From Thalia democratica (Eukaryota): a stretch of DNA of 64,000 nucleotides. A program made the position numbers and the translations under genes. The notes beneath the pieces are model-generated. The model had not been told where the DNA came from. It worked only from the letters and a program-made list of their open reading frames with translations, and made no database searches. Shown here one piece after another: positions 4,426 through 38,385 of this stretch. Position 1 is the first letter of the stretch. The number at the start of each line of letters is the position of its first letter. The stretch is from NCBI GenBank assembly GCA_965202585.1, contig OZ241827.1, positions 12,834,001 to 12,898,000 of the forward strand. The letters run 5' to 3'.

Positions 4426-4560
4426 AAATAGAATTCATTACTATATGGCTAAATACTTTCTACAGAATTGTTATGGTGCAAATTCATTTATACTCTTTAT
4501 AAGCTGTGTGTAAAATGTTTATATATCATTTAGCACAGTGATCTTGTTAATTTTTTTTGG

Positions 4561-10301: not shown

Positions 10302-13300
10302 CTAGCGTCTTCCACCCTTCTTACCGCCTTTTTTCTTGCCTCCGCTGTTGATATTAATAAAAATTTTATTTTTAAAATTTGCTCATAAAGTCGTATTAAG
10401 TTAAAATAATCTAGTCCTGAGCTACTCATTCATTATCTTTTACTTGTTGATTATCACTAGAAGCTTAACTTGATAACAGTTAAATAATATTAAAAGAATT
10501 TAAATTTATTTATAATCTTCAGCTTTCACAAAATTTAAATTGAAAATTTCAAGTTTCTTAGTAATAAAAAAAAAATAAAACTCACGTCGTTGATGGAAGG
10601 CGACCCATTTCCCTATTAACAGCCTGCAAAAATTATTAAATTTTATCAAACAATTTAAAAGGAATACTTTGTTGTTTACTTTTAACCTTTATTGTCAGTA
10701 AGTTATTACCAAGTTTGAAAATTCATAGTTAGTATTACAGCACAAATGGGTCTCATTTGTAATAAAAAAAAGTTTCAAATGACACTCAATTTTTTATAAA
10801 ATTTTTAATTTTACCCCACTTATCAAAAAATTTTCATTCCAAATATTTTATTTGCAACAATTGCAATCCTCCAAATTTAGCAAAATTCAATATTTACTAT
10901 TTTTAAACAAAATAATATTAGGTCATAATTATTATTTTCTATAAACTTTATTAAAATCGATCCCACCCTTCTCCATAACTAATCAAGGGATGTAACATGT
11001 ATCAAATAATATCCAATCTATTTTTTATTTTATTTAAACCTTAGTAACATTGATGCCTCCCTTCTTCTTCATCGTCTTCAGCAGCTTCATCTGCTCCTCC
11101 CTTTCTCCCTTCTTCAACAGCGGATCGAACTTTCTCTTCACTCCCTTCTCCTTCTTTTCTCCCTTCATCTCACCTTCGAACATTCCCATGCTGGCTGTTG
11201 ACTGCTTGGCGTGGTGGAACGCTTTGTTGAGCTGTAACAGATATAAGTTGAAAAACCTGACTTGGTAGGTGACTTAGTTAGACTTAGTTTGAATTTATAG
11301 GAAGACAAATGTAATTTTGGAAACTATTTATACTTAATTAGTTGTTACTTATTTGATTTATTTAGGTATACTACTTTTTATTATCTTGCCAAACTAGCAG
11401 CTGACTGTTCAGCGTGGTGGAACGCTTTGTTGAGCTGTAACAGATATAAGTTGAAAAACTTAATTTGGTTAGGTGACTCAGTTTGAAGTGATATTTATTT
11501 GAACAATTGAACTTATATACACTTAATTCAGAATTTACGCTTTGTTCAGCTGTGTTGATTTATATGATGGTTAAAAAATTTGCATGGCTTGATAACTAAG
11601 CTTAATTGAGCATGTTTGATTAAAAAATAACAAAAACTGGTTTAAATTTTCAGCTGGGCTTAATGGAACAACAAAGTACAAAAATATAAGGGTTGAACAG
11701 TTTAAATTTAAATTTAAAAACAATGAAAAAGGTCCTTGTCTTGGCGACTGACGCACAGCTTACAGTGATGTATAAGGTTATAGGTTATATGAATAAAAAT
11801 ACAGGTTGAAAGTTTTTTTAATGGCCAGTATATACTACAATGGTGTATTTAAAACTATTTGTCAAAAAATTATGTAAAATGTAAAAATATATTATAAAAA
11901 GTTTAATTAATAAAACAATAATGATAAAAAAAAAACTATTTCAAGTACTTAATAAGATAGTTTACAATCACGCAGAAATATCAGAATTTAAATTGTCTTT
12001 TTTATGCCTAAGTCAGGTTTTAAAATAATTTTTATTTGGAAACTAATTAACGTTTAAACTGTAGGTAATATCGTTGAATAAAACGTGTTTTTGATTTGTT
12101 TTATATATCATAAGATGTTTTATGATATAAATATAAGAGAACTATTTCAGATTAATAAAGTGTTTGACAAACAACTGTACAAGGGAGTAAAATTAATTTT
12201 TTTAAATATTGCTGGCTGTTGGATAGCAACGGAAATATATTTTTATTTTTAATATTTTATGTACTTTATTAATTCTTAACTTCTTTTTTTTCTATAGAAC
12301 CCACAAAAAATTAAGATTACTAAGAATAAATGATTTGTACAGCTGTAGTATAATACATAAAACAAGAAACTACAAAAATATTCTTTTGGCTGAGTAAGTC
12401 GCTGAAAACTATTAGTTGCTTCGAACTATTGCATGTATAAGCACATATCAAATACAGTATGTAAAAACAATAGTAAATTTTATTATTTAACAAGTATATT
12501 AAACAAACAATGAATTTATTCTTTCAAGACTTCTTTCTTAAACAAACAATTATAAAGACTACAATTTGCACAGATTGTTCACACAGACGCTTAAAAACAT
12601 GATTTAATAAAAATGAATAGCTTAAAAGGACTAAGGCAAGTTCTAAAGTTCGACAATTTTTTTTCGGTTACAAAAGACACGTATGAAAACCAGTATATAT
12701 AAAACTTATTTAAAACAAATCAAACAGATAGCCAATTAGCCTGATATGCTCAAAACGCATACGTGTATCAATAAACCAATCAGAATGCTTGATTTCCACT
12801 TCACGCATGGATGCACACGAGCGTGAAAGTTCAGCCCATCGAATTGCAATTACTTACTTGTTATTAATTTAAAAACTACTTGAGCCACAATATACAACAG
12901 CTTTTTGTTTGGGAGCTTTTCAGTGACATTAGGGCGTATTATGCCGTCATAATTTGTTTGTGATTTTTTTAGTGGGGTGTGACGTCATAATAGAAAAAAA
13001 AAAATTTACTAGACATATATAAATAAAATTGTAAGCTTACTGTTATTAATTTTAAACCCGCAACAAACAACAACACATTATAATAAATCCGCAACTTTTT
13101 ATATGTTATACATTCAGTGGCAGTACGGCTTTACGCGCTTTTGTGACGTCATAATTGAACGAAGAAAAACTTGAAATGTCAGCGAATTATGACGCGACTA
13201 AAAAGTAGTCGTTTTCGATAAAAAATATACTAGTGTTTGTAGGTTTTCAATGTGGATATTTGTTTAAATAGTGTTTTTACGAATACGTAATCAATTCAAA

Positions 13301-16300
13301 ATTATGTAAAAACAATCAAGTTTAAGTTTAATTATTAACTGCATGCGTTCAAAGTCCAATTGCTGTTATTTATATAACTTCCATTTTTTAATTATAAAAT
13401 TTTTATTAGCTTAAACTTTGACAGATTCAACTTAATAACATTAAAAAAATTAACTTAAACGTGGAAAACATTTTCCAATAAATATTAATTCTACCATGAC
13501 TTAGATCTTATTACTAATTATCTTATTCAATTACTAATATTTGTCTACTTGTTTTATCATTGTGTTTTTTATACTTCAAAGCCCACAAAAAATTCTTGCT
13601 TTCATCACAAAACACCTTTCAATTAACTATATAGTTATCTAAAACCCTTCATGAATGCGTTTAACATCTGAACATAAACAAGAAGTTAATAATCTAAACT
13701 GGGACAGAATAAAATTCACCGAAAGTTTATTGTCTTTAAAAAGTATTTATGTACATTTGAATTGGTGAAAAATAAACCCTCACTTTGAGACTTTAAAGTT
13801 TTTTAAACAATTTTTAAATTGGTAAAATATAATTTTAACTTTGAGTTGACTTTAAACAAAAGTCAAATACAAGTTTAAACTTAAAAATAAACAACAGAAA
13901 GTTTGTAGTCATCAAAAAGCATTTACACAAATAACCACTTTGAATTGCACTTATAACAAGAGTGCTTCAATATGCTTATTATATATATGAAACCCACGCA
14001 CCCATTATAACGTGGCAATTCAATTTCATATAATTACTATATAGAATTTAATTATTTAATATCATTGTCTAAAGTAGATTTATTTCTACATACTTTAAAA
14101 TAACTTACTTTATACATAAACGTTAATTACAATAACTTTGTTAAAAATAAAGTCTGAAACTACATTAAGTCATAAGATATTTAAATGGTTTGTGTTGGTG
14201 ATTAACAATTGAAGATTGTAAAAAATACAAAAACTAAAGCTATTTTTTTAGATTACGTGTGAATATGAATATATGAAATTAAAGATTACTTCAAAAATAT
14301 TTTTTCATACTTATACTACCGAAAACTTTTAAATTTAACGAGTTTTTGTGGCTTTGTTTCAACTTATGAATAATTAAAAAGATTTCAACTGTAAAATTGA
14401 TGTATTACGTTGCTTACTGATGCATTCGAATTTAAGCTTGTAAAAACAATTCGAAATATTTGTGATTAATTATGTGTCAATAATTGAAACCAACAGCTTC
14501 ATATATAAATTTATATAAAGCAAATTAAAATATAGAGTTGGTTTTTAATCCAAGTGTTGAATATCGAACAGACGAAAAACTTTAACTTTTCTTAATACAT
14601 TATTTCTTTGTTTCGACTACAAGGAAAACATTACTTTTGTTCTTAAAAATGTAAACCAAACAAAGAAAAAACAATTCTTAAATTATCCTCTTCAATTGTA
14701 CTTCTGTACTGAGAAATAATACGAAATTGCAAAGATTAGGGTGATTTGAGTACAAAAGCTGTTTTTTGTTGAAAGCCACAATATATAATAACAAGGTCTT
14801 ATTAAATTAAAATTGAAGTATATTGAAATATAACAAGTTAAGTATGTTACAAAGTTAAGGAAGGTTTTGGGGAGGGAAAGGCACTGATGCTTGTCTTAAA
14901 CAAAAGTAAAAATTATGTTTAATTTAATTAATTAAGAAAAAGTGTCAAAACTAAAAGACATGTGTTTCAAAATTAGAAAAAAATAGGACAAGAGAAAATA
15001 TTAGGTTGGAATTTTGGGTTAACTTAAACTTTGGGTTAACTTTAATTTAACCACTTTTGAGAAATTATTTTCATACGAAATAGTTTAAATTTAACAACTA
15101 CTCAACAAGTTTAATGAAATTCTTGTAATAAAAAACACTAATAAACTTTTAACCCGGATTATTAGATAATATTTTAGCTAGCTTTATATCAAAAAGCTCG
15201 TTATTAGTATTGAAGTTTATAAAAAAAATTAAATTTTATAACTTTTTTTTTTGTTTAACACATTTATTCCAAAATTCCAACCTAATATTTGCTTTTGTCC
15301 TATTTTTTTTTCTAATTTTGAAACACATGTCTTTTAGTATTGACACTTTATTCTTACTTTATTAAATCAAACTCAACAAACACTATTTTTACTTTTGTTT
15401 ATCACAAGCATCAGTGTCTGTCCCCACCCGAAACTTTCCTTACATACATAGTATTTGTTATATCTTAATATACTTCAATTTTACCACTTACTATTACCAC
15501 TTACTGTTTTAAAGTTTCTATTCAACTCATGTCTTTGCTTTTATCCTTCCCAGTCACCAGCGCCTCCTCACACCCAATAAACACAAACTTATTTTCGTGT
15601 TAATCACACTACATGAATTTAACAAACAGCACATGTGCACCTCATATGTGTATTTTTATATGGTTAATAATCTTATAATGTCACTACAAACCTCATCCTT
15701 GCTCTTGTCCTTGCCTGGCATCAAAGTCTCCCCAACCCCGGGCACCTTCTTTCCCCGGTTCCTGGCGATGTTCCTCATCCTCTGCACGTCGTTCTTCGCG
15801 ATCCGCTCCTTCTTCGCCGTCAACCGCTTCTCGAACTGGTCCTCCATCGGGTCTGTTTCACAAGAGGGGATTTTATTATGAGTTTTAAAATAATGTTTCA
15901 ATTAAGGGGATTTTGAATTATAAGTTTATACAGGCGGTTTATACTTATCAGTTTATTTTTGTACTTAAAATTTTAAGGGTTTTGTCCTCTATCGGATCTG
16001 TTTCATAGGAGGAGATTTTCATGTTATATGTTTTATTATGACGGGTTTTATGCTCTTACAGGATTGTTTATGTTTAATGCATTTTTAAAGCTTTATAATT
16101 GAGGGAATTTTAACTTATTTTTAAATTATGTCACGGTAATAAGAAAATTTCTTATTGGAAGCAACAAGATGTAACTAGTAAAATTATTAATCTTTCAATA
16201 AAATAGGTTACGAAACATTACTACTTACCAGCATTGCCGGGTATTTCAATGCACCATTCTTTAGTGTCGTCGTTAGCACGCTTGTAACCCCAATTTGGTT

Positions 16301-18526
16301 TGTATGACTGTAAAATACATTTTTTTATAATTGGCAAAAAAATATACATCTAGTCTATAAGATTAAAAATTTAGTTAAATACTAGGTTTAAGTAATGAAA
16401 AAAAAAAAATATATAATTAATTACTTAAGGTATCAGCTATATAAAATCAAAAAGCCTATTTAAGAGTTTGTTTATGTTCTACATGAGTTTAAGACCTTTT
16501 TACGAATAAATAACTATTTAAATTATGAAATTTTCGCTACTTAAGAAATTCTGTTAATGAATAAATATTAATAATATTTTTTTTAATTATCTTACTTTTG
16601 ACTTCTCGTCCCAAACCATACGTTCCTTTTTCTTTTTCTTGATACCCTGAAACAAAATAAGTTATAAAAATAAATACATTTTTTTAATTGTGTAAAACCA
16701 TCTGTCTAAAAAAGGCATTATTATACGTTTGTATAGATAATAAAAGTGACTGGTGTTGCTTCAAGCTTTTTAACGAAGAATTTTATTTTTATAGCAGTTT
16801 ACTACATCTTCTTTTTAACTATAAAAACTGATTTTTTTAACAACAATTCAAATAAAAATAGCTTAATTTCCAACCTTCAATTTGGCAAACTCCTGCCATT
16901 TTGTGAGTGGCTTGTCCTTTGGAATCTGTAAAAACATATTATTTTAATTATTAAGTTTTTAACAAACTTATTTGTAAATTTTTATCAACTGTAGTTTTTT
17001 TTATTGGTAAAAGCATCAAACTTAATTTCAGAAACAAATCCATAAATGATACAAATCTTATTTACAGCTGAATTTTATTCTATATATTAAAAATGTCTAT
17101 TACAATACAAAATGCTAATTAAACTTTAAATAATATCCATTTGTAAATTTGAAAACAAAACTTATAACTTACAGGTTTCTCTCTGGGCAAAACGGTGGTA
17201 CCAGCAGGCAACTGAAAAAAATTAATGAACTTATCAATATATATTAATAAACAATAATGTTTTAATTTTAATCAATAATTTTTTATTAAGTAGTATAAAC
17301 GGTAGAAGACAAACTTTAGATTTGTCATTAAATTTTTAATATTACAGTACTGAACTAAAAATAAAGTATTTCAGCAAAATAAAAAAATTAGTTAAAAAAA
17401 TTTAATTGAAACAAACATACTTTTGCAATGTAGACGTTGTCGACTCTTTCGATGGGAAGCTGAAATTATAAATAATTAATAAAATATTTGTTATTTAAAA
17501 TAATTAAGAGTTATATAAAAGTTTTATAACTATTCGCATTGCAAAAAAAAAGTGTTTTAAAAGTAGTAAATGTTTTCAGAAACAGTTTAGAATTGACTAA
17601 TATAACATAACATACAAAATAATCTATCTACAAATTCAGTACTTTTAAAGTAATACTTTTATAGTAGCACAAAACACAAAACAAATTATATAAAACCACT
17701 GTTTAAAAAAATTATCAAAAATTTATACATTTAGTAAATACTTGAAGAAAAATTAGTAATTTTGAAACTAATGCCACTTATTTCAAAGGCATGTTTTTTT
17801 TATGTTCATAACCTTAAAATAAATAAAACAAACAACTATTACAAACCTTCCACAAATGATTAGCTAGGACTTGCATGTTGTCTCTTGCCAGTTCTTTGAA
17901 GTATCTCTCGCTGTCCTCACTGTAGAAATATAATGAAACGTAAATTAATATTTTTATGCTGAAAGCTACTTGACTTATTTTTAGCCGATTAAATTTTTAT
18001 CGCATAGAAATTAACATAAAAAATTTAAAGGCGTAGTATAAGCTTTTTGTATGAGAAAATTTTACTCAGTTCTACTACAAATATATGATTTTTAGTAGGC
18101 TGTAAAACTATTTGAATTAAATATTTATTTGTCTTTCACACACAAACTTAAGAATTATACAAAACGCTGCAGTATAAACAATGTCTTTAATAAAAAGCTC
18201 CAATACATTTTTATTATTTCCGTAGTATATAACAGTACGATATCAAAGCTTACACAAATTCATTTCTTGATTTTTTAAATTAAGGTTTTCCTTGGAAAAC
18301 CAAACAACATAATTTTTCCGTTTTGCATTTTCAAACTAAGTAAAACCCAAAAAAAAACACTAAAAACTAACACGAATTTATCCACATTGTGCGGGTTGAC
18401 GTCGGTGGACAGCAAGTTACCGACGTCGCATTCAATCTCAATGGGTTTGTTGACTGAGATCAGCTTCTCACTCTGCAAGATCTCGTCGTTGATTTCCTTC
18501 TGTATCCTGTCTATGTCGCTCACCAT
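10302..18526 (-). CDS. RRS1: Ribosome biogenesis regulatory protein RRS1, 11 coding exons, 306 aa
   Basis: Exons 18526-18372, 17919-17847, 17459-17421, 17211-17173, 16925-16875, 16646-16596, 16307-16229, 15852-15692, 11231-11040, 10623-10586, 10344-10302. All introns are GT-AG and phases are consistent (921 nt). Motifs: DVGNLL, LARDNMQVLANHLWKLP, LPREKP, PLTKWQEFAKLKGI, WGYKRANDDTKEW, DPMEDQF, AKQSTASMG, G/K-rich C-terminus. Confidence 0.95.
11381..11480 (-). other. Duplicated acceptor and 5' part of RRS1 exon 9 (decoy exon with stop)
   Basis: Near-identical copy of 11197-11280. The acceptor gives an exon start at 11434 that reads LNKAFHHAEQSAASLAR* (TAA at 11383-11381). Confidence 0.8.
12940..13200. 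other. Cluster of four ATTATGACG-type motifs (two full TGACGTCA) in RRS1 intron 8
   Basis: Motifs at 12944-12953, 12980-12987, 13144-13151 and 13186-13195 in a CpG-enriched patch. Confidence 0.5.
14810..15484. mobile_element. Foldback/MITE-like element with ~210-bp diverged inverted arms in RRS1 intron 8
   Basis: 14810-15018 is the reverse complement of 15268-15484, e.g. AAAAGACATGTGTTTCAAAATTAGAAAAAA versus TTTTTTCTAATTTTGAAACACATGTCTTTT. Confidence 0.75.
15524..15580 (-). other. Degenerate duplicate of the 3' end of RRS1 exon 8
   Basis: Reads IGCEEALVTGKDKSKDMS*, versus GVGETLMPGKDKSKDE in exon 8. Confidence 0.6.
15948..16020 (-). other. Duplicated acceptor of RRS1 exon 8 (decoy with stop)
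   Basis: ...TGAAACAG|ATCCGATAGAGGAC (start 15997) mirrors the true ...TGAAACAG|ACCCGATGGAGGAC (15852). It reads DPIEDKTLKILSTKIN*. Confidence 0.7.
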
Positions 18527-18548
18527 TTTGTTAATTACTAATATTTGT

Positions 18549-18556
18549 CTGGAAAA
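18549..18556 (-). promoter_or_regulatory. 3' splice acceptor 22 nt upstream of the RRS1 ATG
   Basis: TTTTCCAG|ACAAATATTAGTAATTAACAAAATG. Confidence 0.55.
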
Positions 18557-19338
18557 CGTTAACAAATTTGAAAGGCGTTTCGTAGAAAAAATGCTTTTTT
18601 TTACTGTTAAAAATTAAAAAGAGAATGTTTATAAAAAGTTCGACCAGTTTGTAGAATTAACAGGTCTGAGCATGCAAAAATAACAACGTCTAAAAACTTT
18701 AGATTAAAATGTTAAAACTAGACTAAAAGTTAGTTATTGCTAAAAAGTCTTATAGAGTTACATACAAACGAACTTAAACCATTAAAGATTGTCCGAGTAA
18801 TTCATGAAAATAAAACTGAAAAACCACCACCTTTACGTTTTATAGTTTTTGACAAAAAACACTTATATATACATATATAAAATACTATTTTTAATTCTAA
18901 ATTGTTTGAATATGTTGATGGAATTTACAAAAGCAAGTTTGAAACTGAATTTAAAAGATTTTATATATTAATTCAGGCACTAATTGCAACTGTACTTGGA
19001 AAAAATGGGTCATGAATACTATATATAAGATATTTACACTTTTAAACATTCTATTAAAAGATGCTTGTTCATAAAAAAAGGTTTAGTCTATGTCAAAAAG
19101 AAGTTTACTATCTCAGAAAAACGGGTTGAATGGTAAGAAAGCATAAGTTTACTCTATATACAAATGCATGAACGGGTTAAAAATCGTATATCAAAAGTAT
19201 AAATATGCACAAAAGTAGTAAATATAGTTTGTGTAATAAAAAACAAAAACAGAGTTCCACAATAAGTTCATGAAAGCTTCCAAAGACCCTCATTGAACGT
19301 TTTACTTGAGGGAAAACCCCTGTTCAGCAACTCAACAC

Positions 19339-20853
19339 TTAAGCGGGGAGGGAAAGCTTCTTGCCCTTGAGCACCTTGGTGACGTACAGGTAGAAGAAGT
19401 CGCAGTAGAGGATGGTCTGAACGACGCCGGCAACGATGGCGATGAGGTCGAAGAAGCCCTCGCTGTGGTAGCGGTACACCCAGTTGAAGAGGTACAGGCC
19501 GCGGTACAAACCGAGAGCGAACAGGTAGTGGGTGGTGATGGTCTCCGCCTCGCCTGTTTGGAAAATTTGAACGTTAAGATGGAGTTATAACTTTATTAGA
19601 ATAATGTTATTTAATTGTGTACTTTAATTAGAGGGTGAAACAATGTTTTGTTATAAATTTTTTAAAATAAAAAACTTGTTTTTATTTGTAAAAACTTTAA
19701 AACTTTACCAATTGTTAATTTTATTTTTTTTAATTCTGTCTTTCATCATATAAAAATATTTTTTTAATAAGAATTTTAATAACTTACCAGTCTTGCTGAT
19801 CATGAACAGTTGGGGAAGGATGGCAACCGATTCCAAGTAGATGGAGAAAGTCCACAAGATCTCCAATGCGCTGAACTCGTGGTTGACCAGGAAGGCGAGA
19901 CCGCCAACGGGAACAATGAGAAATTCCGCCCTGTTGTGTGGAGAAATAATATTAAATATTTAGTCTAAGGGCAGTGACTAAACAACTGTGTGTTAAAGTC
20001 ATCTGACTTTAAGGTAGTTTTGTTATAAACAGATTGTATTGAAAAGAGGCCAATGTAAAATAAACTTAGTTTTGCCAAACATAAACTTACAAAAAATTTT
20101 ATAAGGATAAACTCAGTGATAAAAACCTTAAAAACTGTTTATAAACATAAAACTAATAATTGTTTATGAAATATTTTTTTAATTGAAATTAAATATAAAA
20201 TAAAAATCTCAAAAAATGTAATGCATACCTGAAAGTGTCGTGATTGCCGTCGTAGGTGGCCTTGAACTTGACGTAGACGAGGTAGACGGTGAAGTAGGCG
20301 CAACCGATGTAAATGCACTTCATTGTCGAGTTGTACAGCGAGATGAAGTTGGTGAACAAGTCCAAGTATCTGCGAGTGATAGAATAAATTATACAAACAC
20401 ATCTAAAAACTACATAGTACTTAGGATCAAGTTGAAATAAATTAGTATAATGATTGCTTTAAGCCTCGTGGTAAATGCAAACATTGGCTGTAAGTAGAAA
20501 CTTATAAAAAGATGGTGAATATATTATTCTTTAATTTTCAAATAAAATTTATAAGCAATCTTGTTTGTACACAAATCTTTAAAAGGTTGAAAACTTTATA
20601 TTCTAGTTAAATTTTCAAACTTGCTGCTTAATCATTGAGTTTTGAAATACTTTCAGATTTTTCTATAATCAATTAACAAATGTAAACTGTATAAACTTTT
20701 ATTTTTAAACTACCTAGTAGTGAAGACGAGAGCGAACAGGAACTGGGATTTTCCGCTGATGCCTGCGCAACTCCTGGTTTTCCAGATTTTCATCAGAAGC
20801 AAGATGATTGCCAGCAAGTGGCTCAAATCCCCGGCCAGTCTGAACACATTCAT
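19339..20853 (-). CDS. KDELR: ER lumen protein-retaining (KDEL) receptor, canonical copy, 4 exons, 212 aa
   Basis: Exons 20853-20714, 20369-20229, 19930-19788, 19553-19339 (639 nt, GT-AG). Protein [17 protein letters not shown]...[10 protein letters not shown]...RYLDLF...[11 protein letters not shown]...[22 protein letters not shown], with R5, H12, R47, R169, D193 and the lysine tail intact. Confidence 0.97.
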
Positions 20854-20874
20854 AGTGAATAATTAATAAATAAT

Positions 20875-20884
20875 CTGAAAGAAA
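20875..20884 (-). promoter_or_regulatory. 3' splice acceptor 21 nt upstream of the KDELR ATG
   Basis: TTTCTTTCAG|ATTATTTATTAATTATTCACTATG. Confidence 0.55.
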
Positions 20885-21717
20885 CGTTTGGTTGACAACT
20901 ATGATGGTTGTTTAACAGTTAAATTAGTGTGCAAGATTGAAGTGTTAAACAAGTACATGTACAGAAAACATATTTATGCCACATAATCTAATCTGCAAGA
21001 AAATAAAAAATGATTAACGTAAAAACATAATGTCTGTTTAACAGTTAAATTAGTGTGCCAACAGTTGCTTCAACTGAGCAAGTTTATAATGACATTTAGC
21101 CTGGGGCTATCAGCTTTACTACTTTAAGTAGCTGTGAAAATAAAACAAAAAACAAAACGGTAAGTTTAAAGAAGTTTAAAACTCAGCACATGGTTAAAAT
21201 AAAAACTTGTATATTTGTAGGTTTAGAACGGTACAACTTAAAATTTCAAACAAGTACACATACACAAGGAACATTATACCATGTACTCGCAAGTTTAATA
21301 CAAACAAATACTTATAAGAAACAACAAAAGTTCAAAAATATTAATGTTTATTTGACTGCTGAAGTTTCATGATTTAATTAATATCATATCTACTTAGATG
21401 TATCTAAAATTACAAAAGGCAGTTTAAACTCTATGTACATAATTATAGTTAGAACATATCATATTGAATAACTCAAAAACGTTAAAGTTATCAGCATAAA
21501 AAAGTAAGATATATGTAAATAAAAAACTATATAACTACAAAGTTAATCTCATTAGAAAAAGTACAGACACTTGCAAAATTTAATCAGCTTCGTTTATGCT
21601 TTGCATAGAAAAAACAACTAATTGCTTGAGAAAAACATCCAAAAAATACACTTATCTAGTATTTGATGTACTAAAAACATGTTTTTGAATCACAGAAACA
21701 TCCTTGAAACTCAAAAA

Positions 21718-22499
21718 TCAAACTGCAGCAGCCTGTGTTTCATCGTTGACCTCATTTTTGACGACAACATCAACTTTTCCCTGAGGCTTGTCATCAACGT
21801 TGGAAGAAACAACAACAACTTCATTTCTGGTTTCCAACAAGTCATTCTGCTCCAGCTGAAGGTACCCCCTAAGTCTATACTTACTCCCTCGGACTACTTT
21901 AGTCGCGTACATGTAGAAGAAAGGACAGTAAATAAGAGTTTGAACGATTCCACCACCTATTGCTATAAAATCATAGAACCCCTCGAGGTAGTACCTGTAC
22001 ACCCAGTTGGCAATGTAGAAAGCCCTGTACAAGCCGAGCAAAAATATGTAATGGAGCGTTATGGACTCGCACTCTCCCGTTTTGTTGAGCATGCAGAGCT
22101 GCGGGACTATTGCCACCGCTTCCAAGTAAATGGAAAACGTCCACATCACTTCCACGAACGACAGCTCGTGGTTTATCAGAACTGCTAGAATGAAACAAGG
22201 TACGAGCACCAAGTAGGACTTTTTAGGATTGTTTTTTCCGTTGTAAGTGTCTTTGTAGGTGCGGAAGGTCAGAAATACTGTCAGGTAGGTCAGGATGACA
22301 AAGAGGCACTTCATCATTGTGTTGTAGACGCTGATGAAGTTCGTGAAAAGGTCCAAGTACCTGGTGGAAAACACGACGGCGTAGAAGACCTGAGAAATGC
22401 CTGAGAGGCCGGAAACCGATCCGGTTCTGAATATTTTAACTAGAACACAACTATTGCCAATAAGTGAGACATGTCACCGATGAGCCTGAATACATTCAT
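21718..22499 (-). pseudogene. Intronless KDELR paralog A, with a 1-nt deletion near codon 19 (~22445) and an extended C-tail
   Basis: ATG at 22499 gives MNVFRLIGDMSHLLAIVV. The frame then shifts (14 nt where copy B has 5 codons) and is open to the stop at 21718. No introns at the parental positions. Could be a recent pseudogene or an assembly error. Confidence 0.85.
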
Positions 22500-23312
22500 G
22501 GTGTTTTCGTTTTATGTTTAGTGTGGACAAAAGCTTACTCTTTAGACTTTAAACAGTTTAGTGTTCTACTTGTAATTATTTGATAGAAAACCCATGAACA
22601 AGGTGAATGCAACAATTGACGTTTTAAAATCTTTCAACTGTAGTCCCAACTCTTTACTCTATTACAACCTATTAATTAGTTATAGTAGTACTTACAAATA
22701 TTATTAGTTTTTAAAAGCATTACCAAATAAAAACAAACTTTGTGAAACTTTTTAAGCAGTTAAAAGCAAACATGATTTGAAACTAAACAAATCTTATGGC
22801 TAAAAATATAGAAGCACCTTGTGTTCAAACAATCTTGATTAAAAAAACTAAATGTTTTTAAGAATGAGTTATAGAAAACAACTTAAACTAAATTTAGTAA
22901 TATTCTACATGGTTAAGTGCATGACTATAAATACATGTTGATTTCGAAAAAAATTTTTGATTTCAAAAAAACTGCAATATTTTGTTCATGATATACTAAA
23001 TACCATATTTATGTAATGTGTGTGTAATGGCAGCTTAAGTACAATGTGAGATTAGTTCAACAAAACATATTAAATTTAAAAATACAAAATGGTGTTAAGG
23101 CTATATAAATTTTATTAGTAAACCGCACATAATTACAAAAATTCACTTTAAATTCATATGTTTGAAAATTTAATAAAAAATACTACAAAAAGACATTTGG
23201 CTCTACAAAACTTAATCATGTTTATCTAGCCACACTACAGTTTTTGGCTTTTTAATGTTCCAAACTTTCATGTAAAAAAATTATTTATTTAACTTGAATA
23301 TACTGAAACAAG

Positions 23313-23460
23313 TCAAACAGCAACTGGTTTATGATCTGGAACCAGCTTCAACTTAAATTTTGACACCACGTCCACTCTTGAATCATGTATGTCATCAACC
23401 TTGCTTGAAACTGACATTTTTTATGTTTATTTTTTACGTCCTGAGAATCTCTCTGCTGGG
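23313..23460 (-). pseudogene. Relic C-terminal tail of a paralog-C-type KDELR copy
   Basis: Reads QQRDSQDVKNKHKK(fs)MSVSSKVDDIHDSRVDVVSKFKLKLVPDHKPVAV*, homologous to the copy C tail QSDPQEVKNKRVSSKVEDVLDSRVDVV. Confidence 0.75.
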
Positions 23461-23755
23461 AAATTCCAAATTGTATGTTTATAACTATTGCTAATACAAA
23501 TTAGATAAAAGTGGTGAAATGATAAAAAATGTCAAGGTTATCACTCAAAATATCAAAAAATTTAAACAAAATTCAGTACAAAAACAAGATTAAGCTTAGA
23601 GCGAAAAAGTACAGACACATGCTCTATTTAATTTGCTTCATTTTTGCATCGAAAAACTTAATTGATAAAGAAGTACATCTAAAAAAAGCTAATTTTCCAC
23701 AATTTACATCCTAAAAGCATTTTTGGATAACACAAACATCATTCAAACTCAAAAA

Positions 23756-24535
23756 TCAAACTGTAGTAGCTAGCGTTTCTTTGTTGATCTCATTTTTCAA
23801 CAAAACATCAACTTTTCCTTGAGGCTTGTCATCGACGTTGGAAGAAACAACAGCAACTTCGTTTCTGGTCTCAAAAAAATCACTCTGCTCCAGCTGAAGG
23901 AACCCCCTAACCTTATACTTATTTCCTATGACCACTTTAGTTGCGTACATGTAGAAGAAAGGGCAGTATGTAAGCATTTGAACAATACCACTGCACAAGG
24001 CAATATCGAATTCCATTACTTCAAAGTACCAGTTCACAATGAAGAAAGCTTTGTACACGCACAGACAAAATATGTAATGGAAAATTACAGGCTTGCACTC
24101 TCCCGTTTTGTTCAGCATCCAGAATTGCGGAGCCATTGCCACCACTTCCAGGTAAAACGAAAACGGCCGCATGACCTCCGTGAACGCCAAGTGTTCGTTT
24201 ACCAGAAGCGCTAGAACCAGACAAAATATAAGGATGAAGTAAAACTTTTTATGATCGTTTTTGCTGTCGTAAGTCTTTTTGTGGGTTTTGAAAATTAGAA
24301 AAACCGTCAGGTAGGTCAGGCTGAAGTAGATGCACTTCATCACTATGCTGTAGACGCTGTACAAGTATAGGAAGATATCCAGGTACCTGGTGGAAAAGAC
24401 AATGGCGTAAAACACCTGGGAAATGCCTGAAAGACCGGAAACTGATCCGGTTCTGAGGATTTTAACCAAGAGGACGTTTATTGCAAACAAGTGAGACATG
24501 TCTTTCATCAATGTTAAGACGTCCATGGGAACCAT
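23756..24535 (-). CDS. Intronless divergent KDELR paralog B, 259 aa, intact ORF
   Basis: Single ORF collinear with KDELR (DMSHL, SGISQ, RYLD, YLE, PQ, TGE, HY, YCPFF), plus a 47-aa tail ending -ATTV. Flanks are homologous to those of copy A (~2-kb duplication unit). Confidence 0.88.
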   Translation of the reverse strand: MVPMDVLTLMKDMSHLFAINVLLVKILRTGSVSGLSGISQVFYAIVFSTRYLDIFLYLYSVYSIVMKCIYFSLTYLTVFLIFKTHKKTYDSKNDHKKFYFILIFCLVLALLVNEHLAFTEVMRPFSFYLEVVAMAPQFWMLNKTGECKPVIFHYIFCLCVYKAFFIVNWYFEVMEFDIALCSGIVQMLTYCPFFYMYATKVVIGNKYKVRGFLQLEQSDFFETRNEVAVVSSNVDDKPQGKVDVLLKNEINKETLATTV

Positions 24536-25482
24536 GTTTTATGCTTGGTGCATACAAAAACTTACTATTCAGACTCAAAACAGTTTAGTGTTCTGCTTGT
24601 AATTAGTAACTATGAGACCATGTACAAGATGAAAAACAACACTTGAGGTCTAAAAATCTTCTTAATAATTAAGTCTTAACTTTGTTACAACCTGTTATGT
24701 ATTAGAGTAATATTTACAAATTTCATTATTTTTATACTTCATTACTTAGTTATACTAGCAGTTACAAAACATATTTTTTTAAAGCCATTACCATAAACAA
24801 TTACATAAACATATGAAATTTTGAAACAGTAAAAGGTGAACATGATTTTATACTAAACAAATCTTATAGGTTAAAATATTGAAGCAATTGGTGTTTAAAA
24901 AAACTTGTTCAAAAAACTAAATGTTGTTTAGAATGAATTATAGAAAACAACTAAAACTAAATTTAGTAATATTCTGCATGATTAAATGCATTATTATAAA
25001 TAAATGTTGATGTACTGTTACTTTAATTAAAAAAATTATTAACTCGTTTAAGGAGTTATACCCAACAACAAGTTACAATTATTAAAAAGCCTAAATTGCT
25101 AACAGGTTCAGTTTTATGGTATAAAAAAAAACAATTTCAAAGCAAATTATTTCTTTAACTTTTTAATTTCAAAAAAGCTGAAAATTTTTGTTCAAGCTTT
25201 ATGATTTACTTAATACCATCTTTGTGTAGTGTGTGTTAGGCAGCTTAATGCAGTGTGAGATCATTTAAACAAAATATATTTTTTAAAAGCAAGTGGGTAA
25301 AACAAAATTTTTTATATGATGGTAGGCTATACGAGTTTATCAAGTGAACCAAACATAATTAGCAAAAAAATGCACCTTAAACTTAAATATACTTAAGACT
25401 TAAGACAAAACTTACTGAACTTACTGTATCTTATTACTACAAACTAATAAGCCACGCTAAAATATTTAAATGTTTTATGGCT

Positions 25483-26237
25483 TTAAAATGTTCCAATAAC
25501 CACATCAACCCTTGAATCAAGTACGTCCTCAACCTTGCTTGAAACCCGTTTATTCTTTACTTCCTGAGGGTCTGACTGCTTCACCTCATTGTAACTCTGG
25601 CACCCCTTCAACCTGTAGCCTCTTCCCTTGCGCGCCTTGGTGAAGTACAGGTAGAAGAAGGGGAAGTAGATAATAGTTTGAAGCATCCCTCCAGATATTG
25701 CTATAAGATCGTAAAAGCCTCCATTGTAATACCTGTCTGCCCAGCTGGCTATGTAAAAAGCCCTGTACAGACCCAATACGAATACGTAGTGCATTGTGAT
25801 GGTCTCGCACTCTCCCGTTCTGCACAGCATTATTGTCTGCGGGATCATGGTCACGGCTTCCAGGTAGATGGAGAAAGTCCACATGACTTCCCTGAACGAA
25901 AACTCGTGGTTTATCAGACAGGATAAAAGGGCTACAGGGATTAAGAGAAGAAGGGTCCAGTGGGTATCATTTTTGTCATCATAAGAGCTCCTGTACTTGT
26001 AGTATACAAGCACTACTGTCAGATACGTGAGGAATATGAAGGCGCACACGTTATCGTGTTGTAATAACTGATAAAGATTGTGAACAAGTCCAGGTATCTG
26101 GTGGTGAACACCAGAGCGTAGAAGACCTGAGTTTTTCCAGACAGTCCTGAAACAGATCTTGTCATGAGGATCTTAACAACCAGAATGACCAAAGCAAGCA
26201 AGAGGGAGATATCAGCTATGGGCCTGTATATATTCAT
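25483..26237 (-). pseudogene. Intronless KDELR paralog C, with a 1-nt deletion near codon 64 (~26049)
   Basis: ORF 26237-26019 (MNIYRPIAD...RYLDLFTIFISYYNT) joins ORF 26049-25483 (CAFIFLTY...YFPFF...) when one base is restored. Confidence 0.85.
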
Positions 26238-27209
26238 GCTGAAGTTTTTCTTAAAGGACTTAATAATAATTTACAACATCCTAGTGTTACTTAAAAGGTA
26301 AAAAAACAAAAACAACCATACGAATGCTTAACAACTTGACATTAGTACATTTAACTTGCGATTGGCTGTAGATTTCTTAATAAATATGCTGACTCCCATG
26401 TACGCACTCTGCTGAGTTGGTTGAGGTGTAGAAGTTTACAAATTAGTTATTTATAATAATAACTGTAAAAATATTTCAAGTTTAGTAAAAAACTCATTTG
26501 TCTAAGTTTATAAAAACTATAAAATCTAAAAAACTGCACAGAACACATTGTGTATGTTCTGATAATATTTTAAAAGTGTGCCCTAATAAGGTATTGCATA
26601 GATTTTTAGGAAATTATTAAAAGGTGATGCATACTTATGTTATAAAAGAACGTATTAAAAAAGTTAAGAATTAAGTATTTCAAAAATTTGAGTGTTATAA
26701 AAGTCTACATAGCAAGATATAATTGTAAATATTAGCTAATGTTAAATTTTACTCAAAATTAATGTAAAAAGCTAGAAACTTGTGTAAGAAACAACAGAAT
26801 GGCTTCATTGATAAAATACATTATTTACAAATGTTTACACAACATAATTGCACTTCTATTTAAACAAAAAATGCAGTTGATTAAATTTAATAAAGTTAGA
26901 GGTCTTTAATTTATGCATTAATGACAACAGTGTACTCATAAACTTATTAAAAATATTTTATTTGTATGTATCAAACATACATTTTTAAATATATTTAGTT
27001 ATTAATTTACTATTCTTTCTTATTTAGTTACAATAAGTTTGAATCAAAAAATTCGAATGAAAAGTTTAAACCTGCATTTACAATGAATGCATGTGTGAAC
27101 CTGAAAGCTAAAAACTTACTTTATGAAAACCAAGTATTATGTAACATTAATAAGCAGTGAGCAGCTGTAAGTATATTTAAAAAATTGTATTTTAAGTTGT
27201 GTGTAAAGT

Positions 27210-29483
27210 CTACAGCTTCAATCGCTTGATGTCTGCATCCTTGAACTCCACCCTCAGTGCCAATATTTTTTTTACCTCAAAAGGGGTCAACCTCCACGTC
27301 ATGTGGCTCTGACCCCACCAATCCTTCATTTCCTCAACACTGTCCAAATTTAAAACAGTGCTGATCTGGTTCAACCTGCTGAACCTGTCCCTTACCGACC
27401 AGGAAGCTACAGTTGTGATGTAGGTGACCAGTGATCGGAGTTCCTTGTCAAAGAACATGGCACCTAATCTGTTGAACTTGCTCTTGACTACAGTGTTTTC
27501 TAGCAGAAGGACAACTTCGTTGACCACCCTGGTTATTAATTGGTCGTATATTTCCTCCATCAACAATTCATTGAACTTGCTTAATAAAGTTTGCAGGTTG
27601 AATATGAATTGCTCTGCCCACGGATCATCAGCCTCATACTCCTCATGCTCTTCCTCAGATATGTTGTGGCTGACTGACAAAAAGTTTGACACCTGCGGCT
27701 TGTACTCTGGCTTCACTGCTTTGTTGTGCAGTTCAGTGATTGCAGCGTCCCTGATTGCCACAAACTGCTGTGAGAGATTGTCCAGGTCATCCAGGCAGCT
27801 GTTGAACTTGTCCTCGTGGCCCTGCAAGTGATGCCTGAACAGCCTGTTGATGTCCTTGTCCAAGCTGGACTTCAGCCTCAGTATGTGCTGGCTGCTCACC
27901 TGCAAGTTGTTAATGGTGATCAGGTAGTTGTGCTGGGACACCCTCGTGTTGTCATCAACACTTTTGATCTTTCCCTGCTGGAAAGAGGACTGCATGACAG
28001 TGTAGGCGGAGCTGATGTTGCCCAAAACGCCACCAGCGTTGTAACCCTCCTCAACTGTGGCTTTCAGCATGTTTTTGAGGTCAGAGTCAAGTATGGTGAC
28101 AGTGTGGTTCAATATGACGCACACACAGTCTATAGAGGAGCTATCAATGGACCTTGCAATGCATTTTCTTATGATGAAGAAGACATCATCAACTATGCTT
28201 GAAGTTGTGCAGCCCTCTTCCAAATGGTTGAGCTCCTTTGCCCTGTGGATAGACTCCTTCATGTAGTACTCTTCAATGACTATGTATTTTGAAATGACAG
28301 TGTGAATGAACACTGACAAGTCAGAGCTTTTTATCCACTTTTGGAACTCAGACCAGGACTCATCTCTTTCACTTTGGTTCGGGTAGACAATCTCAATGTC
28401 AGCCTTGATGCGCCTCTTGATGAACCTGAGATAGAGCTCAGCGCGGGAGCTTATCACTGTTATTTCATTTAACAATGTTTCCAGCTTTCTGGGGTCAAGC
28501 TTTTTAACTTCTTCATTTTTCTTGCTGTTGGCAAACATTGAAATTTGAACCTGCCTCTCAGTCTCAGCAAAGTTCCTCTGCTTGAGAAACTCATTGAGTA
28601 TCTTGTTGGCCTGCTTGTCACATTCAATCTGCAGGTTTTTCATCAAATCAAACAGCTTTCCAGGGCCATAGTAAGTCTCAACAAGAATCTGCTGCGTTTC
28701 TATTGTCTTGGCAATGCCCTCAAACAGAATTGTCAGTATGTCTGAAAAGATAATGTGGTACTTGGAGTCTGTTTTTTCAATGTTCACTGCTTGTTTAAGG
28801 TTGCTGGTGGCGCTCTTTGCAATTTCACCAGAGAGGTACTTGGAAAACTTGGTCAGGCCCAGGTCTTCCAGTTTCAGCCAGGGGAAAATTTTAAAGAATT
28901 TTTCAACATCTGCCTGGTTTCCTTCCTGCACTGCTAGGTCAAATTTTTCAGAGACCACTTTTGACATCTCCTCCCTGGCGTTCTTGAGAACTTGCAGTGA
29001 GGCGTTTATGTTGGTGCTCTCAGCTCCAATGTTCACGCTCTGCTTTATAACATTCTCATCTAGGCACAGGTACCTGTGAATGTTTGCAGCAGCCTTCTCA
29101 TAGTCCTGACACTCCATGGCCATCTTGACACCATCTGTGCAGGTTTTCAGGTCAAGAATGTCATCAACCCTTTGTATGGCCTTGAACACCTGGTTCTTTG
29201 CCAAATCTAGCAGCTTCACTTTGGAGCTGATGTCGTCAGCAAGCGTGGAAGTGAACTCTATGGTCTTGCCCAGTCCAACCAGCTCTGTTTGGGCGACTGA
29301 CAGCAGTGGAATGCTGCCATAGAGCTGCTTCATCTGGGCTTCCAAAGTGCTTTTGTTCTGCAGCAGGCCGTCCAGTTTTGCAGTGTGGTGTTTCTCTTCA
29401 TCTTCAACTCTCAAGATTGCCTCTTCTATTTCGTCCAAAGTTGACAGGTTCTTAATTTTGTCTGGAATCTTAGCCAGCTCCAT
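27210..29483 (-). CDS. COG4: Conserved oligomeric Golgi complex subunit 4, single coding exon, 757 aa
   Basis: Motifs LLDLAKN...QRVDDILDLK...DYEKAAANIHRYL, SSIVDDVFFIIRK, KFNRLGAMFFDKELRSL and WRLTPFEVKKILALRVEF match recalled COG4 sequence. Confidence 0.95.
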   Translation of the reverse strand: MELAKIPDKIKNLSTLDEIEEAILRVEDEEKHHTAKLDGLLQNKSTLEAQMKQLYGSIPLLSVAQTELVGLGKTIEFTSTLADDISSKVKLLDLAKNQVFKAIQRVDDILDLKTCTDGVKMAMECQDYEKAAANIHRYLCLDENVIKQSVNIGAESTNINASLQVLKNAREEMSKVVSEKFDLAVQEGNQADVEKFFKIFPWLKLEDLGLTKFSKYLSGEIAKSATSNLKQAVNIEKTDSKYHIIFSDILTILFEGIAKTIETQQILVETYYGPGKLFDLMKNLQIECDKQANKILNEFLKQRNFAETERQVQISMFANSKKNEEVKKLDPRKLETLLNEITVISSRAELYLRFIKRRIKADIEIVYPNQSERDESWSEFQKWIKSSDLSVFIHTVISKYIVIEEYYMKESIHRAKELNHLEEGCTTSSIVDDVFFIIRKCIARSIDSSSIDCVCVILNHTVTILDSDLKNMLKATVEEGYNAGGVLGNISSAYTVMQSSFQQGKIKSVDDNTRVSQHNYLITINNLQVSSQHILRLKSSLDKDINRLFRHHLQGHEDKFNSCLDDLDNLSQQFVAIRDAAITELHNKAVKPEYKPQVSNFLSVSHNISEEEHEEYEADDPWAEQFIFNLQTLLSKFNELLMEEIYDQLITRVVNEVVLLLENTVVKSKFNRLGAMFFDKELRSLVTYITTVASWSVRDRFSRLNQISTVLNLDSVEEMKDWWGQSHMTWRLTPFEVKKILALRVEFKDADIKRLKL

Positions 29484-29504
29484 TTTTTTAAAGATTTTAA
29501 AAGT

Positions 29505-29515
29505 CTACAGAAAAG
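29505..29515 (-). promoter_or_regulatory. 3' splice acceptor 21 nt upstream of the COG4 ATG
   Basis: CTTTTCTGTAG|ACTTTTAAAATCTTTAAAAAAATG. Confidence 0.55.
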
Positions 29516-29944
29516 TACTTGTTTTTTAGTTGATTATAATAAATGTAACTTTCAGATATTAAAAAACTTTATTTGGATAATTTTAATACAAAATCTAATT
29601 CTAATAACTTAATTTTTTTCAATACTTTTTGACTGCACAAAACTAAAAAAAAAGTTTTTAATCATTTTAAACATTGAATTTAACATAACATTTGAGTTGG
29701 AACTAAAACTTGGTTTTATTTCTAATGGAAATTATTGACATTAGAACTTGACTTAATATAAAAACACACATAGATCTTATTCATATTTTTTTTAATCTCA
29801 TAAAAAAAGTTTAGTTTATCTTAATTACGAAATCAACTACATATGCTGTAACATTAGAGTTCGAAACATACTAAAATTTGTAAGCTTGACTAAATTTTAT
29901 CCACAAGCTTTTATCTCAGGTTAATTTAGTAGAAAATCTACTTA

Positions 29945-30261
29945 CAGGGCTATCACTCGTTTTTTCAAAAAATTTTCCAGGTTTTCCAAATTTCTTCCAG
30001 AATTTTAAAAGTACACATTTTTGGGTCTATTTTTATTTTAAAGATTATTTTAAGGTAAGGAACTGTGTTAAAAAGTATTAAAAAATTGAAAAGATACTGT
30101 AAAACTACTTTCTATGTTTTTTAATAAAAAAATTTAAATGACAAAATCTTTTTATCTATATGATAGATTTTTTGAGTCAAATCAAAATTTTACTACTGTA
30201 CATGTTAAAATTGTTAAAATTCCATGTTTTTCCAGGTTTCCAGGTAAAGTGGCAACCCTGT
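29945..30261. mobile_element. ~317-bp MITE with CAGGGTTGCCAC-type TIRs (hAT-like)
   Basis: Left end CAGGGCTATCAC, right end GTGGCAACCCTG, flanked on both sides by TACTTA. Related ends at 9372-9383, 32430 and 48782/49079. Confidence 0.65.
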
Positions 30262-33202
30262 ACTTAGTTTGTAAAGATATAACTTTTTTTTGAATTATCA
30301 AGAATGCAAAATAGAGCTTAAAAAAAATATTACACACATAAAGAAAGTGGTATTGCAAAAGCTTAATAAAAAATTTTAACAATAATATAAAATTAACTTT
30401 ATATTGAAAATAGTTTTAGTAAAAGTCAAAGTCTAGAAAACTTTATACTTATGTATTATGAATACTTAAAAGAATCATAATAATAACAAAAGGTATTAGT
30501 TATGAAAATAAAAATAAATGCTTTTTTGTAACAAATTTGATTTTTATTTATAATAAAAACTAGCCTGAGATTAATATATAAAGGAAATATATACAAACAT
30601 GTCTAAAGCTAGAAAAAAAAATTCAGAACACCTTAAGTTTTCAAATGAACTGAAGAATCTTAAACTAGTCTGAGTTTTAAAATTTTCCAACTAGCATGAG
30701 TTAGTCTAAAAGGACTGAGAAGCCTGAGTCTAAAAGGTATCCCTGATTTTTAGAAGTATTAAGTTAATAATCAATATAAAAGATTAAGGTTTGGCTTCTA
30801 ATTATTACAAAAAACTTTTTTAAATTAGTGTAAGTAATTTTAGCTGTAAACAAAAGATATTATAATAATCTATTTATTCAAGTACAAATATTTAATGATT
30901 TAAATTAAATTTTAGTGTATTATGTTAAAATTATTTCTTAAATTTAAAATTACACCTGAAATATATAAAGTACTTAATATTAACGGTTTTAAGCATTAAG
31001 CAAACAATTCAATTAGTGAAAATGTAATTTTTTTTGTAAAAACAACCAAAATAACATTTTTACATTAAAACACACACACTATGGTTTTTAATCAAATCAC
31101 ATCAAATTTCATACTTAAAAAAATTTTATTGAATATAATTTAAACAACTACTTTGAAACTATCCAGCCTAATTATTTTTAGAAATATTTTAATATACAAG
31201 TCTAATAAAATTAGTTTTTGTGTAACATGCTACAATTTTAAGATTCATTGAAAAAATGGTATGAAGAATTTTATATGAATAAGATTTAATAATTAACTGA
31301 TGATCCCTTTTCTGAGTGAAACATTGTTTTGAAAATAAAATCTTAAAAGATTGGAATTTATATTATTCTCTAATTAATAAGATGTGATCTATAATTTTTA
31401 TCTTTAAAGATAAAAGTTTTACAAGAAATAATAGTATTAAATAAACCTTTTCAACAATTTTTACATTAGATCAAACTTAACCGAGTTTTTATTTCAAGTT
31501 ACATCATTATAAATAGTTTTAATTTAAAACAGCATACACTTTAAATGAGCTACTGGAACAACTTTTTAGACCCACTTATATTTTTCAACTGGCTAAGAGA
31601 CAAGTAAAAAAATAAATAAAATGTAGCAAAAACCATAAATATTTATTTACCATACCAAAATATGCAGCAAACAACTAGTTTAAAATAGCCTTGTTTTTTT
31701 ATAAATTTTATAATTATTAAGCAGATTTAATAAATATTAAATTTCAAGTAGATAAAAACTAACATTATTAAAGAATTTCCACTAACTAAGATGAATAAGT
31801 TAAACTAGCTCATTTTTCCAAGTAAAAATTTGGTTTAATTTAAAAAACTTATAATTTCAGTTTAACCTTTTATTTTTTCTAAGATTTTAACATAATTATG
31901 AAAGCATTCAACACATTTATAAACAAAATAATAACTTATAATACAATAATAAAATTGATATATGATTTAATAAAAAAATATTTAATTTATCTTAAGTCTA
32001 ATAAACATTTGTAAAACTTATGAGTAGCCAGGGTAACATTGGTCATTCATACTATAACAAAGAAACTTATATAAAACATTTTATTATTTTCTAAATTGGT
32101 CATGTTTATTGTGTTTGGAACACTTTTTCTACATATTTTTTTAATTCACAAAAATAACTGATAAACTTATTGTAATCTAGTTAAAACAGTTTTTTTAAAT
32201 ATCTTAGAAAAGAAGATCTGTATACTACAACATCTACTTGTGGAGGTTTAGATTACAAAAGCCCTGTATTCCAAAAGGTCCTTTAATAAATGTTTAAGCT
32301 TTAAGAAAATTCCAAAAAACAACAGTTATTTAATATAAAGATAACTGATTTGTTTTATTTAAATTATTAAATATATTTATTATAAATAATAAGAAAACTT
32401 TATATCTGTTGAATTAATTAAAATAATTACAGGGTTGCCAGTTATTTATAAGAAATTTTAAGTTTTCTTAATTTCTTCCAGGTAAAAAAACCAAGTATTT
32501 TTGTCTCTTTGTTGTAAAAAAAAAAACTTGAGGTAATAAATGTTTTTAAAATAATAAAGATACAGAAATGGTACTACATTTTTTTTTTTAATAATAAGTA
32601 AAGGTCTGATAAATATAACAACTTACTTATTGTATACATTAGTTCTACCTTATCTTATCTGATTTTATTATTTTCATACTAAAATTATTTAAAATTTTTA
32701 TTTTTTTAACTTTTTTGTTCAACATTCAATGCTTTTCAAAAGATCAAGTTACAGGGCTTTTTTTTTTCAACTATCAAATTCTAGGTTCAATGGCTACTGT
32801 TTTAGATTAATTTGTAGTCGTTAGAAATTCAAAAGTTTAAAAGTTGTTTTAATAAAAAGAACGATTATTTAGAAAATTATTAATTTTTATCATTTTCTTA
32901 TAACCTTAGTTCCTAAGAATTCAATAAATTAGGTGCTTACAAAAAACAATATGAAAATGAAACTCAATGAAGCTGGCTAAGAATTTCATTATCAATAACT
33001 TTAAAAAACTAAAAGAGACCAGTTTATGATCAAAAGTTTAAAGTTATCTTTCAACTTTAGTGACTATGTTTTTTTTATTTTTTATTTTTTTATTTACAGA
33101 AATGTTTAAGATTTATATTGAAAGTGTTTACAACAATGTTCCATTCATTTTTAATCTAACTTCTAAATAACTTATTTTACTCATACTATTTAATTTTTTT
33201 TT

Positions 33203-38295: not shown

Positions 38296-38385
38296 TCGTT
38301 TGTCAAACGAAAAAAAGCGCTCAAAATATTTGGTCCCAAAACCTATTTCACGAAAAAACATTTCGGTTATCGAATAGTGCACCAC
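38296..38385 (+). repeat. Repeat family X copy
   Basis: AAACGAAAAAAAGCGCTCAAAATATTTGGTCCC...TTCGGTTATCGAA. Confidence 0.65.

Follow-up and report, generated by a model that had tools for sequence, protein, structure and literature searches.

A predicted Ciona-type operon junction between KDELR and RRS1 in Thalia democratica, within a cluster of six co-oriented units

We analyzed a 64,000-nucleotide (nt) stretch of the Thalia democratica genome (contig OZ241827.1, positions 12,834,001 to 12,898,000; the window, in whose own numbering all positions below are given), the minus strand of which carries six same-direction units between 18.3 and 29.5 kb, namely COG4, four KDELR units (A to D) and RRS1. 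This layout, read directly from the sequence, is as claimed by an earlier note made from the letters alone, which went on to propose that the six units form a single operon resolved by spliced-leader (SL) trans-splicing, an interpretation that our analysis partly supports. The best explanation of the data as a whole, to which we give a probability of roughly two in three (0.68), is that SL acceptors are present at COG4, KDELR-D and, very probably, RRS1, and that KDELR-D and RRS1 meet at an operon junction of the type described in Ciona; a single operon of all six genes is possible. Under the mechanism that we propose, these three genes would receive a 16-nt SL identical to that of Ciona at AG dinucleotides lying 21–22 nt before their ATGs, with the case for RRS1 being very probable. 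The KDELR-D transcript would run through a 790-nt 3′ untranslated region (UTR) as far as the RRS1 acceptor, at whose AG the precursor would be cut, with the upstream piece being polyadenylated at that AG without the aid of an AAUAAA and the downstream piece gaining the SL. The intronless KDELR copies A–C that lie between COG4 and KDELR-D would be tandem DNA duplicates, two of which are predicted to be disabled here.

KDELR-D is trans-spliced in close relatives

The stop-to-start spacers of the cluster, again by direct sequence reading, are 972, 947, 1256, 864 and 812 nt in the order from COG4 to RRS1 (range 812–1256 nt). An AG is found 21, 21 and 22 nt ahead of the ATGs of COG4, KDELR-D and RRS1, respectively, at exactly the coordinates reported in the earlier note, and each of the three is preceded by a YTNAY-like branch motif (TCAAC/TTAAC) and by an upstream sequence with 60–73% pyrimidines. 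KDELR-D (19339..20874, minus strand) is the gene model of a canonical four-exon KDELR, encoding a 212-amino acid (aa) protein, with the 5′UTR at 20854–20874, the ATG at 20853 and exons at 20714–20853, 20229–20369, 19788–19930 and 19339–19553, which are supported by six spliced cDNA contigs. Our source of cDNA was assembled public contigs (Tara/JGI) whose encoded proteins are identical or almost identical to those of the window genes. Two proteins that are 99.5% (P0147) and 98.1% (P0143) identical to KDELR-D are encoded on six JGI contigs (L030–L035), whose alignment to the window falls into four blocks ending exactly at the three intron borders, with 88–96% nucleotide identity across the exons; therefore, these contigs are cDNA.

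At its 5′ end, L035 displays a template-switch (SMART) oligo (acatgggg), followed by the complete 16-nt SL, a 28-nt UTR that begins like the window exon and the ATG. The remaining five contigs (L030–L034) begin 0–10 nt downstream of the predicted KDELR-D acceptor AG (20875..20876, minus strand) and never upstream of it. Since L035 carries the SL and its five companions never start further upstream, close relatives (88–96% nucleotide identity) genuinely use the homologue of this AG as an SL acceptor. The third-codon-position GC content (GC3) of KDELR-D is 81%, amid surroundings of about 25% GC.

KDELR-D transcripts of a sister species end at the predicted RRS1 acceptor

KDELR-D and RRS1 are adjacent and on the same strand, and the KDELR-D cDNAs extend into the apparent spacer between them, with five reaching the window equivalents of 19088, 18923, 18864, 18725 and ~18575, and L035 reaching 18549. 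The 3′ end of L035 consists of a T-rich tract, a CAG and then 11 A residues (A11). A conspecific Tara genomic contig (L039) matches L035 with 97.7% identity over 518 nt, and the match stops exactly at the G of this CAG, past which the genomic contig has 20 nt that are not A-rich and then the RRS1 ATG. This absence of an A-run in L039 rules out both a genomic run of A residues and internal priming as the origin of the A11, so that the A11 represents a poly(A) tail placed at the proposed RRS1 acceptor AG (18549..18550, minus strand). Thus, the 812-nt spacer is, for the most part, the 790-nt 3′UTR of KDELR-D (18549..19338, minus strand; cDNA contigs L030–L035), which reaches up to the RRS1 acceptor.

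Across the window and five further genomic sequences (L039–L043; n = 6), no variation is seen in the approximately 30 nt upstream of this AG, which end in TGTTAAC, GTTTT and C/T-CAG; in the window, this conserved block (18549..18580, minus strand) ends in TGTTAAC-GTTTTCCAG. The RRS1 5′UTR just 3′ of the junction varies freely across the same six sequences. No AATAAA or ATTAAA is present within 60 nt of the KDELR-D/RRS1 poly(A) site. In Ciona operons, the upstream gene's poly(A) tail directly follows the acceptor AG of the downstream gene, with no intercistronic DNA, and 16 of 18 such operons lack a canonical AAUAAA (PMC1488885). The same abutment of the upstream 3′ end on the downstream acceptor, without intercistronic DNA, is found in a sister species, and the window has kept the site. 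We accordingly predict, from this sequence conservation, that KDELR-D and RRS1 form the junction of a Ciona-type operon, as seen in that sister species. The operon claim of the earlier note is in this respect upheld for the KDELR-D/RRS1 pair, with poly(A) addition exactly at the RRS1 acceptor AG; a six-gene unit is no more than possible.

RRS1 itself (11034..18548, minus strand, with an approximate 3′ limit) has, as read from the sequence, a 22-nt 5′UTR, an ATG at 18526, a first exon at 18374–18526 and many short exons. One of its exon fragments matches PF04939 below the threshold, as expected of a fragment. We infer that RRS1 gains the SL at its acceptor and shares a promoter with KDELR-D.

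The spliced leader and its RNA gene

Using the Ciona SL as printed in PMC1488885 as a query, we found more than 100 exact copies of the 16-nt leader followed by GT in the Thalia genome, against a chance expectation of about 0.4 by our own estimate. When up to two mismatches are allowed, the genome has 2650 copies versus 442 for a reversed-pattern control. Among these, a conserved unit, in which a short hairpin follows SL-GTAAGT, repeats with a 15,085-bp period on contig C26 and is also found near the ends of contigs C9 and C10 (near 9–10 kb). The 15,085-bp repeat is the rDNA unit, in which 18S, 5.8S, 28S, U2, U5 and SL-GTAAGT all lie on the same strand (L047, corresponding to C26:7000–16999). 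We take the SL-GTAAGT unit of this rDNA-U2-U5 tandem repeat to be the real SL RNA gene; with such a gene in its genome, the organism would therefore have the machinery needed by the trans-splicing hypothesis.

Most of the dispersed SL copies in the genome are not SL RNA genes. One of these thousands lies in the window itself (4419–4434, minus strand), where an exact 16-nt SL copy is followed by 8 nt and an ATG without a long open reading frame (ORF). Elsewhere, the SL copy either precedes a short UTR with an ATG and what looks like coding sequence, an arrangement that resembles retro-inserted trans-spliced mRNAs (e.g., L008/L015, L012 and L013), or opens a small repeat with CTGATGA...GAAAC hammerhead-like motifs (e.g., L011, L019–L022 and L027, the last with inverted pairs). 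A genome search recovered no SL-bearing retrocopies of the COG4, KDELR-D or RRS1 junctions in Thalia, and a degenerate pattern joining the SL, a gap and the first 19 coding nt of COG4, KDELR-D or RRS1 returned only two bacterial false positives from JGI metagenome contigs.

COG4 and the cis-splicing alternative

The first unit of the cluster, COG4 (27210..29504, minus strand), comprises a 21-nt 5′UTR and an intronless coding sequence (CDS; 27210–29483) for a 757-aa protein, which was delineated by its ORF and its Pfam domains (COG4_N/m/C) and is, by genome search, the sole COG4 of the 802 Mb genome. Its closest named matches are from tunicates (Ciona, 56%; Clavelina, 55%; Phallusia, 53%; Styela, 52%), and 99% matches occur on Tara Oceans metagenome scaffolds, which together point to a planktonic tunicate as the host; an exact look-up of the COG4 product, as of the product of KDELR copy B, found neither on record. 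The predicted SL acceptor AG of COG4 (29505..29506, minus strand) is indicated by the sequence and by the starts of cDNAs from relatives: near-relative COG4 contigs, which belong to a JGI accession series shared with proven cDNA samples, begin 16–23 nt ahead of the ATG and never further upstream.

Two cDNAs of a COG4 orthologue with 65% aa identity, one from JGI (L044) and one from Logan (L045), both display a template-switch oligo, the full SL, a 23-nt UTR and the ATG. At its 3′ end, 567 nt past the COG4 stop, L045 has a T-rich AG followed by 17 A residues, without an AATAAA, and L044 continues past this poly(A) point. The leaders of both contigs, the tail of L045 at an AG without AATAAA and the read-through of L044 therefore establish that COG4 is trans-spliced and lies upstream of an operon-type junction in this more distant relative; by analogy, COG4 of Thalia probably takes the upstream place at a junction of this kind as well. 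The sequence 3′ of COG4 in L044 is not KDELR-like. The functional link between COG4 and KDELR, both of which the earlier note names as acting in retrograde Golgi traffic, is thus not kept as an adjacency in the sole other relative seen. The same note's suggestion that the three AGs are outron acceptors is borne out for the KDELR-D orthologue (L035) and the distant COG4 orthologue (L044/L045), with the evidence for RRS1 being indirect.

These cDNAs also bear on a different reading of the AGs, namely that they are the acceptors of short cis-spliced 5′UTR introns, for which the GTAAGT upstream of COG4 (29940..29945, minus strand), present where the earlier note had placed it, could act as a donor. 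That motif speaks for such introns; however, in the full-length cDNAs from the orthologues of KDELR-D and COG4, the SL sits directly at the junction, and seven more cDNA contigs end at the acceptor rather than running on into an upstream exon. None of the cDNA contigs examined from relatives joins an upstream exon to COG4. We reject cis-splicing for the KDELR-D and COG4 orthologues on the strength of their SL-bearing cDNAs (L035 and L044/L045) and regard it as highly improbable for the cluster.

The coding GC content of COG4 is 45% (GC3 61%) in surroundings of about 25% GC, the latter also being typical of the window outside exons. The roughly 13 kb upstream of COG4 (29500–42900) have 20–25% GC per 2-kb window and no 120-nt segment with at least 40% GC; this AT-rich stretch contrasts with the 1-kb spacing inside the cluster.

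Evidence against the junction and the case for separate genes

Several observations weigh against trans-splicing at all three genes and a Ciona-type KDELR-D/RRS1 junction. All RNA evidence comes from relatives (KDELR-D at 88–96% nucleotide identity and the SL-bearing COG4 at 65% aa identity). Searches with RRS1 exon 1 yielded one irrelevant match in a representative library and only genomic exon-1 ORFs in a 90% library, whose contigs supplied genomic DNA for the junction, with no RRS1 cDNA, and none of the contigs recovered crosses 18549 into the RRS1 coding sequence. The sole canonical poly(A) signal of the KDELR-D 3′UTR lies 443 nt past the stop, and two contigs (L032 and L033) end close by (equivalents 18864 and 18923), which suggests a proximal KDELR-D 3′-end isoform that would not feed RRS1. 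It is also possible that an RRS1 promoter lies inside the 790-nt UTR. On the side of COG4, AATAAA/ATTAAA signals are found 247–318 nt past the stop in the window and near-relative COG4 contigs end at 190–303 nt; because of this, the 3′ end of Thalia COG4 may fall well before KDELR copy A. Finally, contigs from relatives with C-type and A-type KDELR copies (L036 and L037) show leaders of 188–208 nt before these copies, without an SL.

Some of these points favor a reading in which all units are independent monocistronic genes, the SL merely trims private outrons, RRS1 is driven from a promoter in the KDELR-D 3′UTR, and it is functionally meaningless that the poly(A) site coincides with the AG. 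Trans-spliced metazoan genes are mostly monocistronic (PMC1488885), and both the proximal poly(A) signal in the KDELR-D UTR and the lack of any bicistronic KDELR-D/RRS1 RNA among the sequences seen fit with it. Against this, poly(A) addition coincides to the nucleotide with a pyrimidine-rich, conserved AG 20–22 nt before the next ATG and takes place without an AAUAAA, which is the defining signature of Ciona operons. Moreover, poly(A) addition at an AG was found at both of the full-length 3′ ends recovered (L035 and L045). We therefore consider independent genes unlikely and favor a Ciona-type junction between KDELR-D and RRS1.

The intronless KDELR copies and the extent of the operon

All KDELR units are recognized by the Pfam ER_lumen_recept domain. 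The earlier note had counted four KDELR units, and four are indeed present; only copy B and the four-exon KDELR-D are intact, whereas copies A and C each have a 1-nt deletion. Copies A, B and C are all intronless with a C-terminal extension. Copy A (25483..26237, minus strand) has its deletion near 26050–26054, with a stop at 26021–26019, as judged against its intact orthologues (P0133 and P0136). Copy B (23756..24535, minus strand) encodes 259 aa and is 82% identical to its orthologue (P0132). Copy C (21718..22499, minus strand) has a stop at 22442–22440 and intact orthologues in P0128–P0131.

Self-comparison of the window reveals that the segment holding B (25011–23525) is 73% identical to that holding C (22942–21475) over 1.5 kb, including flanks and spacers, and that a tail fragment of copy A (25580–25499) is repeated downstream of B (23457–23365). 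B and C are DNA-level tandem duplicates and not separate insertions. No SL relic was found upstream of the intronless COG4 or of copies A–C, and there is thus no sign that these are retrocopies of trans-spliced mRNAs. The idea in the earlier note that the paralogs came to be expressed by landing inside an operon is, accordingly, not sustained, given the tandem duplication of B and C together with their spacers, the lack of an SL relic and the frameshifts in A and C.

A-type (P0136) and C-type (P0130; contig L036) contigs occur in the accession series of the proven cDNA samples, which suggests that the paralogs of both types are expressed in relatives. One contig of this series (L037) starts 208 nt upstream of an A-type copy and extends across 962 nt of spacer into a C-type copy, there being no intervening B. 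An unresolved precursor would have this appearance; being without introns, however, L037 would be indistinguishable from contaminating DNA. A strong conserved pyrimidine tract with an AG lies at 26291–26281, 43–52 nt before the copy A ATG, and the region upstream of copy A (26238–26445, minus strand) is 75% identical overall to a contig of a relative, with near-identical blocks. This conserved region may serve copy A as an acceptor or as a promoter region. In the 120 nt ahead of the copy C ATG, no pyrimidine-rich AG occurs.

These copies are central to the most extensive version of the operon proposal, in which transcription from upstream of COG4 yields one polycistronic unit spanning the entire 11-kb cluster, the kilobase-sized spacers are 3′UTRs cut at the next acceptor independently of AAUAAA, and the duplicated KDELRs are expressed by virtue of duplicating inside the unit. 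Such a unit would account for the co-orientation of its members behind a 13-kb gene-free AT-rich stretch, for the fact that KDELR-D undergoes SL trans-splicing, as a downstream cistron must, for the continuity of L037 from an A-type to a C-type copy, for the pyrimidine-rich AG at which a relative's COG4 ends and past which one contig reads, and for the conserved pyrimidine tract and AG 43–52 nt ahead of copy A. However, at none of the four upstream junctions was an SL or poly(A) addition at an AG seen, the 120 nt ahead of the copy C ATG are without a pyrimidine-rich AG, canonical poly(A) signals lie 120–640 nt past each stop, copies A and C are frameshifted here, and merely two six-gene operons are found in Ciona (PMC2760879). 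A unit of six cistrons hence appears doubtful, and we retain the narrower reading of three SL acceptors and one Ciona-type junction at KDELR-D/RRS1.

Implications

Operons without intercistronic DNA have so far been characterized chiefly in Ciona, and among the papers searched we found none on SL trans-splicing in salp-like planktonic tunicates. A junction of the predicted kind would place the leader and the poly(A)-at-acceptor arrangement of Ciona in a genome about five times as large, behind a 790-nt 3′UTR, which would point to an operon architecture that is independent of genome compaction. Pairs of this sort can be found by distance-based operon calling (e.g., with gene models less than 100 bp apart) only if the UTR ends are correct. 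The KDELR-D/RRS1 junction also offers a natural test case of whether the upstream 3′ end is a product of trans-splicing itself.

Comparison with known systems

Three known systems are instructive with respect to the predicted junction. The leader of Oikopleura is a different and longer SL. As far as PMC1488885 describes it, Oikopleura dioica is like Thalia in being a tunicate, in using one SL for both monocistronic and operon genes and in having upstream cistrons without AATAAA; it is unlike Thalia in that its intercistronic regions measure 23–30 nt. To the extent that the same source covers them, the SL1-type operons of Caenorhabditis elegans also lack intercistronic sequence, with the ordinary SL resolving them at the junction, whereas nematodes keep a canonical AATAAA and both their lineage and their SL are unrelated (PMC1488885).

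The operons of Ciona intestinalis differ from the present case as follows: here, the upstream gene has a 790-nt 3′UTR, the 802 Mb genome is AT-rich and not compact, and the junction is known from metatranscriptome contigs of a sister species and from its upstream-gene side. They are alike in the identical 16-nt SL, in the poly(A) tail that abuts the acceptor AG, in the lack of an AAUAAA within 40 nt and in an acceptor about 20 nt before the ATG (PMC1488885, PMC2760879). A further likeness is the single-exon gene, COG4, at the 5′ end of the cluster, single-exon genes being the commonest 5′-most members of Ciona operons (PMC2760879).

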